Positions 24,187-50,316 of a stretch of 64,000 nucleotides of DNA are shown here, one piece after another. A model generated the notes under the pieces. That model had not been told where the DNA came from. It made no database searches and saw nothing but the letters and a program-made list of their open reading frames with translations. Both the position numbers and the translations under genes were made by a program. The DNA lies in sequence record LR756500.1; one strand, given 5' to 3'. Position 1 is the stretch's first letter; each line of letters opens with the position of its first letter.

Positions 24187-24243
24187 ACCAATGATATATT
24201 TTATTTTATATATCATTAATAGTTCGAGTAAATTATTCGAGGA

Positions 24244-24381
24244 TGGCCGAGAGGGGATTCGAACCCCTGATGTTATCGTGACAAGATAAGACTTTATCCA
24301 TTTATTCTGTAATAACTTTGAGTCCTATTGAGTAGGTAATTTATAAGTTATCTGTGAACTTATTACTAAGCTACTCGGCCA
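24244..24381 (-). tRNA. tRNA-Asp(GUC)-like gene interrupted by ~66-nt element (about 24301-24366) in the D loop
   Basis: GGCCGAG-TA-GCTT-AG|insert|TGGATA-AAGT-C-TTATC-TTGTCAC-GATAA; A73. Confidence 0.8.
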
Positions 24382-24450
24382 TTTTATCGTCTTTCCGATT
24401 GTCATTACATTTTTCCATCTTACGACTTACAGTATAATACTGGTACCATT

Positions 24451-25149
24451 TTAAATATTATATTCCTTTTTAAATTCTATTTTTTGTTTTCTATTTTGAA
24501 AATCTTTTAATATATTTAAATTTATTAAATCTTCATCTATTAAAATTTTTAATTTACAGGGAAAATTATTCCATTTTGCTAAATCTTTTAATGTAACGTA
24601 TCCTTTAATTTCAATATAAATTTTTTCATCTAATAAAAAGAAATCAGGTCTATATCTTCGAGTTTTTCCTTCATATTCATATTCAAATGTAATATAAGGC
24701 CTTTCCCATTTAATATTATTTTCATCTAAATATTTAGCATAAAGATATTCCCATTTTACTTGTAATTTTATTCCATTATATTCATAATAATTTTTTTTAG
24801 AAAAAGATGTATGCCATTCTCCATTTTTTATTCTTTCATTTATTTTATCAGATATTTTTTGTTTATGTTCTTTTGTTAATTCTGTATTTTTAGAATGATG
24901 TTTAAATAATCCTTCTTTTAAATGTTTCGTTAATGTTTCACCACATCTTTTAACTCTTTCATCAGTATCTTTAGTTAAACCTTTATTCCAAATTATTCTA
25001 CCTTTTTTATATCCGGCATTAGGATCATGATTTCTACCTTCTCCATGCATTTTCCAAATATGTGATCCTATTCCATAAATTGAATATTCTTTATTACATA
25101 TTAAACATTTACATTTTCCGTTATCTAATTTTACATATTGTTTATCCAT
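24451..25149 (-). CDS. Homing endonuclease (zinc finger, WNKGLT repeat, PD-(D/E)xK C-terminus)
   Basis: CxxC-H, WNKGLTK, YRPDF...YIEIKG. Confidence 0.65.
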   Translation of the reverse strand: MDKQYVKLDNGKCKCLICNKEYSIYGIGSHIWKMHGEGRNHDPNAGYKKGRIIWNKGLTKDTDERVKRCGETLTKHLKEGLFKHHSKNTELTKEHKQKISDKINERIKNGEWHTSFSKKNYYEYNGIKLQVKWEYLYAKYLDENNIKWERPYITFEYEYEGKTRRYRPDFFLLDEKIYIEIKGYVTLKDLAKWNNFPCKLKILIDEDLINLNILKDFQNRKQKIEFKKEYNI

Positions 25150-25213
25150 GATATATTTATTTTATATATCATGTTAACTCTTGTGCTCTAGCAAATGTAA
25201 TTTATTAAAATTG

Positions 25214-25285
25214 CTGGGATGAAGGGAATCGAACCCCTATCGATGCGTTAACAGCGCACAGCTCGGACCATTGAGCTACATCCCA
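25214..25285 (-). tRNA. tRNA-Asn(GUU)
   Basis: Anticodon arm GTGCG-CTGTTAA-CGCAT, G73. Confidence 0.92.
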
Positions 25286-25369
25286 ATATTTATTTTCAAT
25301 GAACTAATATGTAAATATAATAAAAAAGTAATTAATAAAAAAATCCAGCATGTCAAAGAACCATTTAAA

Positions 25370-25398
25370 CGAAAAAATCCAACTTGTTAGGTTGGATT
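25370..25398 (-). terminator. Intrinsic terminator of attenuator 2
   Basis: AATCCAAC-CTAACAA-GTTGGATT then T-run; boxA-like GTTCTTTGAC at 25352-25361. Confidence 0.75.
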
Positions 25399-25424
25399 CT
25401 TTAATATTATTTATATTGTTAACA

Positions 25425-25496
25425 TTAAGCCCAACTCGATTGGATGATATTATTATCATCTCTTCTATTGTCTATTATGTTAACTAAATTAATCAT
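25425..25496 (-). CDS. Leader peptide 2, MINLVNIIDNRRDDNNIIQSSWA (23 aa)
   Basis: Manually translated; between promoter 25512-25540 and terminator. Confidence 0.75.
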   Translation of the reverse strand: MINLVNIIDNRRDDNNIIQSSWA

Positions 25497-32141: not shown

Positions 32142-32511
32142 ATTTATTTTTTATGACTATCTGGAATTATATTATATGCTTTCATTTCAAAAGGATATAA
32201 CCCTATAAACTCCATTTCATTAGGAATACATTTTTGAATTTCAATTGCTTCATCATCATTATGGCATGCTGCTAAACATACTAATCTTATTGCTTCTGTT
32301 ATATCATCTTCTGATTTAACAATATCACTTAAATGTTTACCTAATAAAGTTTTTACAATTTCTTTTGCTTTAATTAATTCCATTTTCAAAATTTCAAATA
32401 ACATGTAAATTTAATAAATTAGTTTTAATTTAAAAAATTTAGTTTAAAAATATACCGGTTTAATGTAAGGAAGGGGTCTAAATAATAAAGATAACCGGTA
32501 TATTTTTAGAG

Positions 32512-32921
32512 TGGAGCTGCAGGGGTTTGAACCCTGGTCCGTCGAAAGAACTATTAAAATTTCTACATGCTTAGTAACTTTTATCTTTTAATTATTTTAA
32601 TGGTAAGTTACATCCTAATAAAATACTTAGTTGTTATTTTTCGATTAAATATTTCAACTTATATTTAACTTATTTAAGTTCAGTTATGCCATAAAATTAA
32701 AGTACTTAAAACACTTTAAAGTATGACAGCAAATTTAAATACCTAGTATTCAATTTTGCAAGAGTGACTATTAAACAGTACTACCCGTTAAGCTGCCATT
32801 CTCATTTCAGCATTGTTGCCATTTATTATTTGTTATTCATTTCTGTTTAAAGAGAAAAATAAACAAATTCTCTGCATGCTTAATTAACAATTTACTAACA
32901 CGTCAATTCCATGTCAGCCCC
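32512..32921 (-). ncRNA. ssrA: tmRNA; tag ORF 32788-32820 reads (A)GNNAEMRMAA*
   Basis: GGGGCTG/CAGCTCC acceptor with G3:U70, GGAATTGAC 5' motif, T arm, tag ending AA-stop. Confidence 0.92.
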
Positions 32922-44919: not shown

Positions 44920-44995
44920 TGGTTGAATGTATCGGATTTGAACCGAAGACCCTCTGCTTTTAAGGCGGATGCTCTACCAACTGAGCTAATATTCT
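44920..44995 (-). tRNA. tRNA-like gene with UAA anticodon in a class I (Lys-like) body, flanked by the permuted element
   Basis: TCCGC-CTTAAAA-GCAGA, 5-nt variable loop, two acceptor mismatches, encoded CCA. Confidence 0.65.
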
Positions 44996-48591: not shown

Positions 48592-48652
48592 AACTAAATT
48601 TTTTAAATTTCTAATAAGTAAATATAATAAAAATGTTTTAATTAAAAATTTG

Positions 48653-48720
48653 TAGGACTAGTGGGAGCTGAACCCACGTTATCGGTTTTAGAGACCGATT
48701 TCTAACCACTAGATAGTCCC
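48653..48720 (-). tRNA. Amber suppressor tRNA(CUA) with tRNA-Pyl-like geometry
   Basis: GGGACTA / TCTA-GTGGT-TAGA / ATCGGT-CTCTAAA-ACCGAT / AAC / GTGGG-TTCAGCT-CCCAC / TAGTCCT-A; 68 nt. Confidence 0.8.
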
Positions 48721-48725
48721 CTTTG

Positions 48726-48909
48726 TGATTGTAGAAGGACTCGAACCAACAACCCCTCACTTTCAAATTACTGACAAAAATACTATTAAGCGTCCCTAAA
48801 TTCATTTTGTTTTTATTCTATTTATTATAAATATATCATCCACTTATGCGCTATAAGCTTATATACACCTACAATAAAAATAAGACTCTAACCATTGAGC
48901 TATACAACC
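48726..48909 (-). tRNA. tRNA gene with ~112-nt insertion in the anticodon loop; anticodon unresolved
   Basis: Acceptor GGTTGTA/TACAATC, intact D and T arms, stem CTTAT/GTGAG separated by about 48764-48875. Confidence 0.7.
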
Positions 48910-48946
48910 ATGTAAATATAATTAAAAAGATCGAAATATAAAAGGC

Positions 48947-49381
48947 TTATAAGCCTTTTATATTTTTATAGAATGTTCCTTTTTCATCTTTATAATCTTG
49001 TAATGCTAAATCTGCAGCATCTTTTAACTTTAGCCATTCTTTACGAAGCTTTTGAATTCTTTCATGCTGCTCAGATACTAATTTAACTCTTTCATCTGAT
49101 TTTAAAATCTCTTTAGCAACAAAATGAAATAATCTATTTATACTACCTAAACTATTAACAAATCTACATTTATTTAAAAATCTTTTAAGCCTTTTTCTAT
49201 CACATATTCCTAAATCAGTTATATGACTTTCTTTTACTTCTTGTAAAAGATCTTGTTTACCTTTAAAGGTATATACCTTTTTATCATCAATAATTGTGTT
49301 ATTTTGTAATTTTTCAATTTCATTTATTGTATTATAATATTCATTGAACAAATTTGCGTTGTGATCTACTATTTTTTCCAT
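48947..49381 (-). CDS. Hypothetical protein in the amber module
   Basis: ORF track; C-terminal coiled coil; no family recognised. Confidence 0.6.
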   Translation of the reverse strand: MEKIVDHNANLFNEYYNTINEIEKLQNNTIIDDKKVYTFKGKQDLLQEVKESHITDLGICDRKRLKRFLNKCRFVNSLGSINRLFHFVAKEILKSDERVKLVSEQHERIQKLRKEWLKLKDAADLALQDYKDEKGTFYKNIKGL

Positions 49382-49435
49382 TGTTTTAAATTTTTTATTT
49401 TAAGTTGTTTTATTTTTGTTGGGTTTGTAATTAAT

Positions 49436-49483
49436 TTAAAACAAATACGTAGGACCTCTAATTGTAATTTTAATCTATTTCAT
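49436..49483 (-). CDS. Short amber-containing peptide MK*IKITIRGPTYLF (not in ORF track)
   Basis: ATG AAA TAG ATT ... AGA GGT CCT ... TAA; start context 15/16 identical to the upstream gene. Confidence 0.55.
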
Positions 49484-49495
49484 AACTTTAATTTT

Positions 49496-49837
49496 TTAAA
49501 TTTCACGAAGCATAAGTGGTAAACTTGAACATATTCTTTTAGACTCAATTCCTGGCTCAACAGCAATTGCAGTAAGTTGATTGCCTATATCAGGTTCTCT
49601 AAATTCTGTATAAGCCAACTTAGAATGCATAAATTTAGAAATATACTTTTCTAATTCGCATTCATTTTTAACAGATAATAAACAAAGATAATTTGAATTT
49701 TTATTCCAACATTTAGAAATTTCTGGATATTGATGTTGAAAATCTATAGCAGCATGTGTAGCCTGAACTGCCTGATAACCAGGCTTTAAATCTTCCCTAG
49801 TAATAATAATTAGTTTATGATTATTAATCTACTTCAT
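49496..49837 (-). CDS. Pth2-fold protein with in-frame TAG at codon 3 (113 codons; not in ORF track)
   Basis: MK*INNHKLIIITREDLKPGYQAVQATHAA...LSVKNECEL...EFREPDIGNQLTAIAVEP. Confidence 0.75.
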
Positions 49838-49893
49838 AACAAAATTTATTTAATTATTATATGCAAATATAATAAAAATGTTTCAAATAAAAA

Positions 49894-50316
49894 TTATTTT
49901 TTTAATTTATTTTTAACTATTATTTTTAATAATTCATAATTTAAATCATTTGGATGTAATTCCATACAATTTTTCATAAAAAAACCAAAATATGATTGTT
50001 CTCCATATATATGTTTATTAAATTCTTCATTATTATTTTTAATAACGTTATTTACTAAATTAATAGTTTCTTCTTCTGATAAATATTTTGGAAGATATTT
50101 TTCAATTATACAAATTTCATTTATTGCTTGTATGGTTCCTATTGTTTCTAGATTACTTATTAATGTTCTTAGAATAAAGTTAACTTCATAATCTTTTAAT
50201 ATTTTATTAAATTGTCTATGAAACTCTCCAATAATTACTTTTAATATACTAATATATTCCTTATCTTTATTTTTGATAGCTATTTTTAAGTCATTTTTAA
50301 TTTTATTTTGAAGCAT
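49894..50316 (-). CDS. GatB/YqeY domain protein
   Basis: KIKNDLKIAIKNKDK...ILKVIIGE...EKYLPKYLSEEE. Confidence 0.65.
   Translation of the reverse strand: MLQNKIKNDLKIAIKNKDKEYISILKVIIGEFHRQFNKILKDYEVNFILRTLISNLETIGTIQAINEICIIEKYLPKYLSEEETINLVNNVIKNNNEEFNKHIYGEQSYFGFFMKNCMELHPNDLNYELLKIIVKNKLKK

Follow-up and report, generated by a model that had tools for sequence, protein, structure and literature searches.

A giant phage from groundwater, with a genome of 429 kb that otherwise uses the standard code, places a TAG stop near the start of two short reading frames, so that a peptidyl-tRNA hydrolase of the Pth2 family and a small protein of unknown function are probably made only when the phage's own amber-suppressor tRNA is working. 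The locus was examined in a 64,000-nt stretch of sequence record LR756500.1, here called the window. The initial annotation, made from the letters alone, had described a local amber-readthrough module in which one promoter precedes a Pth2-fold ORF with TAG at codon 3, a 15-codon ORF with the same start, a 144-aa ORF, an interrupted tRNA and a tRNA(CUA). That observation proved to be correct, and its support is much stronger than could be seen from the window. The features, all on the minus strand, are as follows.

49863-49887 (-), promoter-like element TTTG-N13-TAtaTTTG (TTTG ... TATATTTG), of the class TTATTATATTTAC/GC that precedes about 17 genes on this strand of the window
49496-49837 (-), Pth2-family peptidyl-tRNA hydrolase gene of 113 codons, opening ATG AAG TAG ATT at 49837-49826 with the in-frame TAG at 49831-49829, and ending TAA at 49498-49496
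49436-49483 (-), 15-codon leader peptide MK-TAG-IKITIRGPTYLF-stop, opening ATG AAA TAG ATT at 49483-49472, with TAG at 49477-49475, the R-G-P codons at 49459-49451 and TAA at 49438-49436
49433-49444 (-), 5' arm of a hairpin, TTGTTTTAAATT, overlapping the last two sense codons and the stop of the leader
49381-49392 (-), 3' arm of the hairpin, AATTTAAAACAA, ending on the A of the ATG of the 144-aa ORF
48947-49381 (-), 144-aa ORF, here called ORF-X, of unknown function
48934-48965 (-), intrinsic-terminator-like hairpin plus T run, overlapping the ORF-X stop codon
48725-48909 (-), interrupted tRNA-like gene with a roughly 112-nt insert, probably a relic or non-standard tRNA
48652-48720 (-), amber-suppressor tRNA, anticodon CUA, class I, with a short D arm, G1-U72 and A73

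The distance from the promoter-like element to the ATG at 49837 is typical of the other genes with this motif, although a generic sigma-70 scan did not flag it. The sequence GTTATGAARTAG occurs only at the starts of the Pth2 gene and the leader in the 429-kb genome, and only one mini-ORF in the genome combines an early TAG with an R-G-P motif. A sequencing error had been named in advance as a possible refutation, but contigs from a second groundwater sample are identical across both TAGs, which excludes it. The YqeY-like gene upstream (49894-50316) is not conserved with the module.

The Pth2 reading frame matched Pfam PTH2 (PF01981) with E 3.7e-7 and 30.8 bits against a cut-off of 23, over profile positions 2-103 of 115. 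A profile of the phage homologues matched solved Pth2 chains over the full length at E 1.8e-8 to 5.5e-6. The active-site segment, K-D-A-G-x-T in solved Pth2, aligns with an invariant F-R-E-P-D ... T-A in the phage clade; the Lys-to-Arg and Asp-to-Glu changes are conservative but the motif differs, so that this segment speaks neither clearly for nor clearly against the assignment, and hydrolysis of peptidyl-tRNA or N-acyl-aminoacyl-tRNA was not assayed. No canonical start occurs for 66 codons after the TAG.

The initial annotation had proposed, as its own test, that homologues should retain the early TAG and co-occur with a CUA tRNA. Among 69 distinct phage Pth2 homologues, 65 start M-x(1-6)-TAG, and 57 of these have a tRNA(CUA) within the retrieved locus of 8 kb or less. 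The 4 without a TAG have none, although two of them sit among 14-18 other tRNAs. The TAG is retained at the same site across homologues down to about 27-50% identity and from 25 to 45% GC. The base after the TAG is A in 48, G in 16, C in 1 and T in 0, whereas after the genuine terminal TAGs of this genome it is T in 9 of 21. The loci are related by descent, and these counts are not independent events. Database entries for the homologues show Q at this position, but these residues are TAG codons read under code 15 by the gene caller; the proteins translate only with TAG=Q, and taking the Q as evidence that TAG means Gln would therefore be circular.

The 15-codon ORF, which the initial annotation took to be unrelated to the Pth2 ORF, proved to be a conserved leader peptide. 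Relatives read M-x-TAG-[I/V]-x-(R/K)(A/G)PP-stop, with RAPP (5), RGPP, RPP, KPP or RGP directly before the stop. RAPP and RGPP are established, context-tolerant arrest cores (PMC10951233, PMC12992588). The leader in the window is a variant, in which I-R-G-P is followed by T-Y-L-F before the stop, and the closest leader, at the related locus L125, reads MK-stop-IIRGPT-stop; whether the window's copy has the C-terminal core R-A/G-P-P or R-A-G-P of the known arrest peptides is left undecided by this. A search for TAG-containing mini-ORFs ending in an arrest-like motif found 49 on the gene strand, compared to 0 on the opposite strand, 0 with an inner TAA, and 0 and 2 with an inner TGA. The leader's own stop is TAA in 31, TGA in 2 and TAG in 1. 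When loci were seeded independently through ORF-X, 32 of 37 had such a leader 52-155 nt upstream, 33 had Pth2 within 3 kb and 30 had a suppressor tRNA.

Sequence at the end of the leader pairs with the bases just before the start of ORF-X. In the window the two arms form a perfect 12-bp duplex (dG -9.5, z -4.2, matched by 0 of 200 shuffles), which is the MFE and centroid structure of the 125-nt region. The hairpin is nonetheless weak, being AU-only with a 40-nt loop and an MFE of -6.4 kcal/mol, no better than shuffles of the whole 125 nt. RNAalifold on concatenated arm windows was unsuccessful because the arms are out of register between loci, and we therefore used per-locus duplex energies with shuffle and swap controls. 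In 25 of 34 loci the duplex energy fell in the best 5% of shuffles, with a median z of -3.9, while some KPP-type loci showed little complementarity in the windows tested. Cognate arms from the same locus averaged -11.1 kcal/mol against about -6 for non-cognate arms (permutation p < 2e-4). Individual related loci show matched changes, for example TTTCTT/AAGAAA in L012 and TGTCTTTTATTT/AAATAAAAGACA in L019.

In two independent lineages the identity of the sensor stop codon covaries with the suppressor anticodon. The lineage G001/L051 has Pth2 MKET-TAA-I and leader MKDT-TAA-...-TAG, and its only suppressor among 41 tRNAs is UUA. The locus L132 has Pth2 MT-TAA-V, leader MT-TAA-VNKPP-TAG and an adjacent tRNA(UUA). 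Both sensors thus carry TAA, and the leader's own stop has switched to TAG. An opal version (TGA with UCA) was looked for in the locus L002 and not seen.

The tRNA(CUA) was found by Rfam with 43.7 bits. It has the G2-C71 and G3-C70 pairs of the Gln identity set (in E. coli a weak 1-72 pair, G2-C71, G3-C70 and G73) together with G1-U72 but has A73, and it resembles neither the phage tRNA-Gln nor the phage tRNA-Trp; comparison with the phage's other tRNAs was uninformative, and the CUA tRNAs of relatives are heterogeneous. The only other TAG-bearing gene in the genome, encoding a DUF6794 protein, has its TAG at a Trp-conserved column, so that these features did not settle a Gln identity, and the amino acid inserted was not identified. 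Genes for release factor, GlnRS/GluRS and TrpRS/TyrRS are absent from the genome. In the interrupted tRNA-like gene the acceptor, D arm and an anticodon arm reading UUA are intact, followed by a roughly 100-nt insert and a weak T arm with two U-U mismatches. ARAGORN found this gene only in intron mode and Rfam did not find it. ARAGORN intron mode found no conserved interrupted tRNA beside tRNA(CUA) in relatives, and the element, included in the module by the initial annotation, is not a conserved part of it.

ORF-X in the window belongs to a family (family B, 319 cluster representatives) predicted to form an N-terminal helical bundle plus a 40-residue C-terminal helix (pLDDT 93.8), with an invariant YK-EKG-FYK tail. 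Searches with Pfam, PHROGs, the ESM Atlas, Foldseek against the PDB, a wide VIA-align search and an atlas fold search gave nothing for family B, the best Z being 5.8 on generic helical bundles and coiled coils, and Foldseek against the PDB gave nothing for family A. Profile-profile comparison found no homology between families A, B and C. ORF-X thus belongs to at least three unrelated families with no known fold, which leaves the output of the switch undefined. We make no binding claim for these proteins, and no complexes were modelled.

The above considerations indicate a small regulon gated by nonsense suppression, a reading we regard as likely although not certain. In this model, the phage transcribes the suppressor tRNA(CUA) and the Pth2-leader-ORF-X mRNA from ordinary phage promoters. 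Ribosomes would start at ATG 49837 and meet TAG at codon 3; if release factor 1 wins, a dipeptide is released and no enzyme is made, and if the charged phage tRNA(CUA) wins, full-length Pth2 is made. The start region of ORF-X would be held in the hairpin whose 5' arm lies at the end of the leader. Ribosomes that stop at the leader's TAG would never reach that arm, while those that read through would run into the R-G-P motif (in relatives RAPP, RGPP, RPP or KPP-stop), arrest, and sit on the arm, opening the hairpin and freeing the ORF-X start. The tRNA would therefore act as a trans-activator, of Pth2 directly and of ORF-X through the arrest-peptide/hairpin switch, and the two early stops as sensors of suppression efficiency, the contest between tRNA and release factor.

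The analysis itself demonstrated the anatomy in the window, the conservation of both sensors with the suppressor tRNA, the covariation of sensor stop codon with suppressor anticodon, and the complementarity of the hairpin arms. Actual read-through, ribosome arrest on such short peptides, control at the level of translation rather than transcription, and the physiological aim are inferences. There are no expression, proteomic or ribosome-profiling data, no RNA run holds the locus, and arrest was not measured; known RAPP-type arrest peptides are much longer than 8-15 residues, and arrest by such short chains is unproven. Why Pth2 should be the gated product was not explained by the analysis. Our guess is that the circuit times and doses Pth2 and ORF-X to the period when stop-codon read-through, with its stalled ribosomes and dropped peptidyl-tRNAs, is under way.

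The interpretation offered by the initial annotation is supported only in part. Its views that the recoding is local rather than genome-wide, that the TAGs are under selection rather than decaying, and that Pth2 expression is gated by the adjacent suppressor tRNA were supported, the last with the reservations on read-through given above. Its proposed circuit, in which MK-stop minigenes shed peptidyl-tRNA in the absence of suppression and thereby feed Pth, is not supported. One to three sense codons before a stop is the length range in which drop-off is high in E. coli, as with the lambda bar minigenes, and the gated product is indeed a Pth2-family protein. However, the loop does not close, because without suppression no Pth2 is made; the in-frame continuation is the conserved Pth2 domain or an arrest motif, indicating that the stop is selected to be read through rather than to end a minigene as in a bar-type element; and three lineages have 6 sense codons before the TAG. 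We consider this circuit highly unlikely. Initiation downstream of the TAG, for example at ATT, had been listed beforehand as an outcome that would refute gating. In that view the TAGs are true stops of two- or three-codon upstream mini-ORFs, Pth2 and the second half of the leader are translated by re-initiation or from a non-canonical start, and the nearby tRNA(CUA) is coincidental. ATT is the commonest codon after the TAG, in 35 of 65 homologues, two lineages have TAG-ATG, and AUU is a rare bacterial start codon, as in infC. This was nevertheless disfavored, and we consider it very unlikely, since 23 of 65 homologues have codons after the TAG that are not usual starts (GTT, GTA, AAC, AGC, ACA, CTT or AAA), the stop is always TAG except in the two lineages with TAA and a UUA suppressor, where a simple uORF would tolerate any stop, and there is no tRNA(CUA) in the four homologues without the stop.

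The strongest competitor, although still unlikely, retains the same sensors but has the leader act on transcription, a ribosome arrested at its end blocking a terminator hairpin or Rho loading as in TnaC or trp-type attenuation. This would control read-through into ORF-X and, in relatives, into the co-transcribed tRNA itself, giving feedback on suppressor dosage. In many relatives a T-rich run (GATTATTATTTTT) follows the leader stop; by our reading the codons after the TAG can pair with that run in the related loci L007 and L017; in relatives the tRNA(CUA) sits directly behind ORF-X with only a hairpin between them; and a synthetic amber-in-leader switch works this way (PMC6412442). On the other hand, the conserved partner of the post-leader sequence is the stretch abutting the ORF-X start codon and not a sequence inside the leader, with the arm in the window ending on the A of the ATG. 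No terminator-like site was scored between leader and ORF-X in the window, where the tRNAs lie behind a terminator and have their own promoter-like motif. Ordinary reassignment of TAG (a code-15 phage) or plain decay of dying genes is all but excluded. A tRNA(CUA) is present, TAG ends only 21 of 575 genes, and the DUF6794 gene carries an internal TAG, yet genome-wide only two protein genes and one leader carry an in-frame TAG, and conservation of the TAG among divergent homologues argues against decay. ORFs of 100 codons or more sum to 397.6 kb of 429.2 kb, and freeing TAG adds 6.6% against 24% for the TGA control; TAG likewise gains less than TGA in 84 related loci, and the relatives' loci, like the genome, are standard-code. 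No excess of backup stops was found after TAG-terminated genes.

We found no published description of such a system, although its parts have relatives. RAPP-type arrest peptides (ApdA, ApdP, ApcA) and SecM (RAGP) regulate downstream genes by stalling. Common to these and the phage loci are a short upstream ORF ending in R-A/G-P-P or R-x-G-P, with motifs matching those shown to arrest with little N-terminal context (PMC10951233, PMC12992588, PMC7897499), and the placement of the stall site over one arm of a stem masking the downstream start, although the window's copy has RGP-T-Y-L-F rather than a motif at the very end. The phage leaders differ in being only 8-15 codons long, in lacking a signal peptide, hydrophobic segment or link to Sec or YidC, the downstream ORFs being unknown helical proteins, and in having as input the read-through of an early stop rather than pulling force on the nascent chain. 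Synthetic switches with a TAG in the tna or trp leader (reviewed in PMC6412442, which cites Liu et al. 2011) have identical logic, but are engineered, act through Rho-dependent transcription termination and use unnatural amino acids, whereas the present one is natural, probably translational, and paired with a second TAG-gated gene. Autoregulation of prfB (RF2) also uses an early in-frame stop, UGA, to sense a contest between termination and alternative decoding, but by a +1 frameshift that senses its own product; here the alternative is a dedicated suppressor tRNA and the products are not release factors. Stop-codon-recoded (code 15 or code 4) phages with suppressor tRNAs (Borges et al. preprint 10.1101/2021.08.26.457843, PMC9523058, PMC10879173) share the phage-encoded tRNA(CUA), a low-GC genome with rare TAG stops and the idea that suppression times expression, but carry in-frame stops in many late and lysis genes, and none of those papers mentions Pth2 or leader peptides. 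PTH2 has been noted as typical of jumbo phages and proposed to help rescue jammed ribosomes (Iyer et al. 2021, PMC7824862), with no mention of the early stop or its link to a suppressor tRNA. The lambda bar minigenes (AUG-AUA-stop) are formally two-codon ORFs with a functional connection to peptidyl-tRNA hydrolase, but have no conserved in-frame continuation and are toxic only in Pth-defective hosts, while here the continuation is the gene itself.

A broader possibility, which we regard as tentative and less likely than not, is that large environmental phages that keep the standard code carry a dedicated suppression-state circuit. A suppressor tRNA, amber or in some lineages ochre, would be deployed as a global switch of translation termination in the infected cell, and the two early-stop sensors would read out how far the switch has gone, turning on a peptidyl-tRNA hydrolase and a family-variable small effector that protect or retune phage translation or drive the next stage of infection. 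If so, the suppressor tRNAs of many standard-code phages are regulators rather than leftovers or precursors of code change, and the ochre version would mean that a phage deliberately suppresses UAA, the main stop codon of both phage and host.

The module would be, as far as we could find, the first natural leader peptide that senses nonsense suppression, a device that synthetic biologists built by hand, and its short, modular and portable parts (a tRNA, a 30-45-nt leader and a hairpin) are attractive as orthogonal genetic switches. It extends RAPP-type arrest motifs to peptides of about ten residues and to viruses, although arrest itself is inferred, and the ochre variants suggest that some phages tolerate or exploit suppression of UAA. 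It ties the hitherto unexplained Pth2 of jumbo phages to stop-codon read-through, and offers a concrete answer to why phages that do not use an alternative code still carry suppressor tRNAs, in which the tRNA would be a trans-acting regulator with a tiny, defined set of targets.

Examination of the 429,198-bp virus record that holds the window, at bases 324729-388728, showed a genome of 24% G+C, rated 96% complete by CheckV, in which nearly all genes of the window lie on the minus strand. Identical or near-identical sequence was found in groundwater metagenomes. The genome uses the standard code, in keeping with the initial annotation, which had described the recoding as local. ORFs of 100 codons or more sum to 397.6 kb, and freeing TAG adds 6.6%, while freeing TGA, used as a control, adds 24%. 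TAG ends 21 of 575 confidently coding ORFs. Elsewhere in the record (G000:C1), near 72305 on the minus strand, a class-I SAM methyltransferase-like ORF has no canonical start before its motif I; its frame opens right after TAA ACA ACA TAG ATT, with no in-frame ATG upstream, suggestive of a non-canonical start, a frameshift or an intron. Two near-identical copies of a stretch longer than 1.2 kb lie about 127 kb apart, at 24223-25440 and 151009-152226 of the same record, and appeared as twin 405-codon frames and twin ATGAAATAG contexts.

The genome carries 26 standard tRNA genes, a tmRNA and two tRNA-like genes with inserts. One of the latter, at window 24241-24381 on the minus strand, was not found in the default scan but was called by ARAGORN in intron mode as tRNA-Ile(UAU) with 62 extra bases at position 29/30. 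A 76-nt class-I tRNA with no long variable arm, an encoded CCA end and anticodon UAA lies at window 44920-44995 on the minus strand; ARAGORN labels it Leu, yet its body is unlike the other, class-II tRNA-Leu(UAA) of the phage at 2203-2286. The tmRNA (window 32511-32921, minus strand; tag GNNAEMRMAA) is preceded by the same promoter motif as the Pth2 gene described below, and together with Pth2 it gives the phage two ribosome-rescue or recycling functions.

Every feature listed in the initial annotation was present where it had been placed, on the minus strand:

49887-49863, minus strand: promoter-like TTTG...TATATTTG, of a motif class, TTATTATATTTAC/GC, that precedes about 17 genes in the window
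49837-49826, minus strand: ATG AAG TAG ATT, opening a frame that ends at 49496 and is a Pth2-family protein
49483-49472, minus strand: ATG AAA TAG ATT, opening a 15-codon frame
49381-48947, minus strand: 144-aa ORF
48965-48934, minus strand: terminator-like hairpin, inside which the 144-aa ORF ends
48909-48725, minus strand: interrupted tRNA-like gene
48720-48652, minus strand: tRNA(CUA)

The Pth2 assignment rests on a Pfam score of 30.8 bits against a cut-off of 23, and a profile of the phage homologues matched solved Pth2 chains over the full length at E 1.8e-8. After the TAG there is no ATG, GTG or TTG for 66 codons. The sequence GTTATGAARTAG occurs nowhere else in the genome. Sequencing error had been named at the outset as something that would overturn the observation, but contigs from a second sample were letter-identical over both TAGs. 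The gene directly upstream of the Pth2 promoter (49894-50316, minus strand) encodes a YqeY/GatB-C-terminal-like domain (Pfam E 2e-10) and is not conserved beside Pth2 in relatives.

The initial annotation had proposed that homologues be examined for retention of the TAG and for co-occurrence with a CUA tRNA. We fetched 84 Pth2-encoding loci, 80 of them from an IMG/VR scan with a profile of the homologues, and read the DNA upstream of the conserved domain. Of 69 distinct proteins, with 27-66% identity to that of the window and from loci of 25-45% G+C, 65 begin with ATG, one to six sense codons and then TAG, and 57 of those have a tRNA(CUA) on the same strand within the fetched 8 kb or less. The four without a TAG have no tRNA(CUA), although two of them sit among 14 and 18 other tRNA genes. 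The base after the TAG is A in 48, G in 16, C in 1 and T in 0, and the codon is ATT in 35, GTT in 9 and GTA in 7. After real terminal TAGs of this genome, by contrast, the next base is T in 9 of 21. A purine after UAG is the classical context for efficient amber suppression (Bossi 1983).

A start at the codon following the TAG, such as ATT, had likewise been named as a reading that would refute suppression. Because 23 of 65 homologues have a codon after the TAG that is not a usual start, re-initiation there is not a general explanation. In two lineages (Pth2 starts of loci L091/L092, at 4001, and L093/L094) the codon after the early TAG is ATG (ATG ACG TAG ATG... and ATG AAT TAG ATG...), so that Pth2 could be made with or without suppression, which may be an escape from gating. 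The Q seen at the TAG position in database proteins might suggest insertion of Gln, but it is the gene caller's reading of TAG and says nothing about the amino acid.

The initial annotation had treated the second ORF as unrelated to the first, but comparison with relatives showed it to be a leader peptide. In relatives the mini-ORF reads, for example, MKH-stop-INRPP-stop, MKTSHW-stop-INNRPP-stop, MS-stop-IKPP-stop, MM-stop-IIRAPP-stop, MRIDYL-stop-IRVRGPP-stop, MKTHW-stop-IKIRGP-stop and, closest to the window, MK-stop-IIRGPT-stop. Across 82 loci, 49 mini-ORFs with an inner TAG end in PP or [RK][AGSN]P on the gene strand, whereas the controls gave none on the other strand, none with an inner TAA, and 0 and 2 with an inner TGA. 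The leader's own stop is TAA in 31 of 34 distinct leaders and TAG in one. RAPP and RGPP are experimentally established arrest cores that work with varied upstream sequence and resist EF-P, and RAGP is the SecM core (PMC10951233, PMC12992588, PMC7897499). The copy in the window, MK-stop-IKITIRGPTYLF-stop, is the only mini-ORF of its kind in the genome.

Each leader is followed after 40-155 nt by an ORF of 105-165 codons. The products, here termed ORF-X proteins, fall into at least three families with no detectable homology to each other. The 144-aa protein of the window belongs to family B, which has 319 cluster representatives in a library of 1.8 billion proteins. Its AlphaFold model is confident, at pLDDT 93.8, and shows a predicted helical bundle plus a 40-residue helix with no informative structural neighbor, and no function could be assigned to it.

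The sequence at and just after the leader's stop is complementary to the sequence just before the ORF-X start codon. In the window, TTGTTTTAAATT (49444-49433) pairs perfectly with AATTTAAAACAA (49392-49381), whose last base is the A of the ATG, and this is the minimum-energy and centroid fold of the region, although the hairpin is weak at 37 C. Across 34 distinct loci the median z against shuffles was -3.9, and 25 loci were in the best 5%. Arms from the same locus pair much better than arms from different loci, at -11.1 against about -6 kcal/mol, with none of 5000 permutations as low, and individual loci show matched changes. A ribosome that ends at the TAG would stay 4-7 codons short of the arm in most leaders, while one that reads through and pauses at the arrest motif would sit on it. 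This is the geometry of the SecM-secA and ermC switches.

Two lineages have changed the sensor codon. In the 675,678-bp record G001 (locus L051), Pth2 starts MKET-TAA-IYNRLYVITR and the leader is MKDT-TAA-IFTRGSPSP-TAG. Of the 41 tRNA genes of that genome the only suppressor is tRNA(UUA), and there is no CUA. The same phage has a tRNA-Leu(UAA) with a 208-nt insert between anticodon positions 34 and 35 (G001:C1:134369-134664, locus L099), the classical site of the cyanobacterial and plastid group I intron. In a second locus, L132, Pth2 starts MT-TAA-VHKLTTVTRRD and the leader is MT-TAA-VNKPP-TAG, with a tRNA(UUA) just behind ORF-X, whereas its amber relatives, such as locus L062, have MT-TAG-V..., MT-TAG-NKPP-TAA and two tRNA(CUA) genes. 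Four features thus change together, namely the Pth2 stop, the leader stop, the suppressor anticodon and the leader's terminal stop, which is hard to explain unless the stops are decoded by the phage tRNA.

We also searched viral contigs with the ORF-X family B profile instead of Pth2. Of the 37 distinct loci obtained, 32 had a stop-containing arrest leader upstream, 33 had Pth2 within 3 kb and 30 had a suppressor tRNA. The relatives' loci are otherwise standard-code, as freeing TAG gains no more ORF cover than freeing TGA.

Gln is the precedent in phages for the amino acid inserted at such a codon, but the residue used here was not identified. The only other clear TAG-bearing protein gene in this genome, a DUF6794 gene outside the window (G000:C1 about 195443-195853, minus strand; locus L087 644-1054), carries one in-frame TAG inside the conserved domain (Pfam E 4e-24 across the TAG), at a column that is Trp in 16 of 20 homologues (IRNN-TAG-GLW against IRNNWGLW). 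It is either a third client of the suppressor or a very recent nonsense mutation. The CUA tRNAs of the relatives are diverse. In one Pth2 sub-lineage a conserved element of about 120 nt sits directly upstream of tRNA(CUA) (L003 3330-3455; L027 4341-4450; L045 5036-5160; L056 4675-4795; L064 4383-4506). It has a tRNA-like acceptor stem, a TAGCTCAGT...GAGC D stem with a roughly 60-nt insert, a stem-loop with loop YATTTAA, and a T arm (GTGCGAATC), and was not identified with any known RNA family. The interrupted tRNA-like gene of the window has an intact anticodon arm reading UUA, a roughly 100-nt insert and a poor T stem. As an active ochre suppressor would defeat the leader's TAA stop, we regard it as a relic or a non-standard RNA, and it is not part of the conserved module.

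The interpretation first offered was supported in part: gating of the hydrolase-like protein by suppression was supported, but the second ORF has a different role from the one proposed. We propose that the suppressor tRNA is a trans-activator. In this view Pth2 is gated directly at codon 3, and ORF-X indirectly, by read-through of the leader, arrest, and unmasking of its start. Arrest by peptides this short was not assayed, and a transcriptional variant of the leader mechanism is possible. Placing the stop two or three codons from the start would mean that failure costs only a di- or tripeptide. The phage has no release factor and no Gln, Glu, Trp or Tyr tRNA synthetase gene, and charging and the competing termination therefore depend on the host. 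As to why Pth2 should be the gated product, read-through of natural stops sends ribosomes into 3' regions and to mRNA ends, and arrested short peptides are prone to drop off. Both raise the load of peptidyl-tRNA, so that a hydrolase induced in step with suppression makes sense; this last step is inference.

Papers on recoded phages and on suppressor-linked ribozymes do not mention a hydrolase or leader peptides, and a jumbo-phage survey notes PTH2 without the stop. A literature search for arrest or leader peptides linked to suppressor tRNAs in phages found only the engineered analogue, in which an amber codon is placed in a leader. We therefore consider the parts, an arrest-peptide leader, a suppressor tRNA and Pth2, to be known, and their arrangement into this module to be new. 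The module is widespread in large environmental phages.
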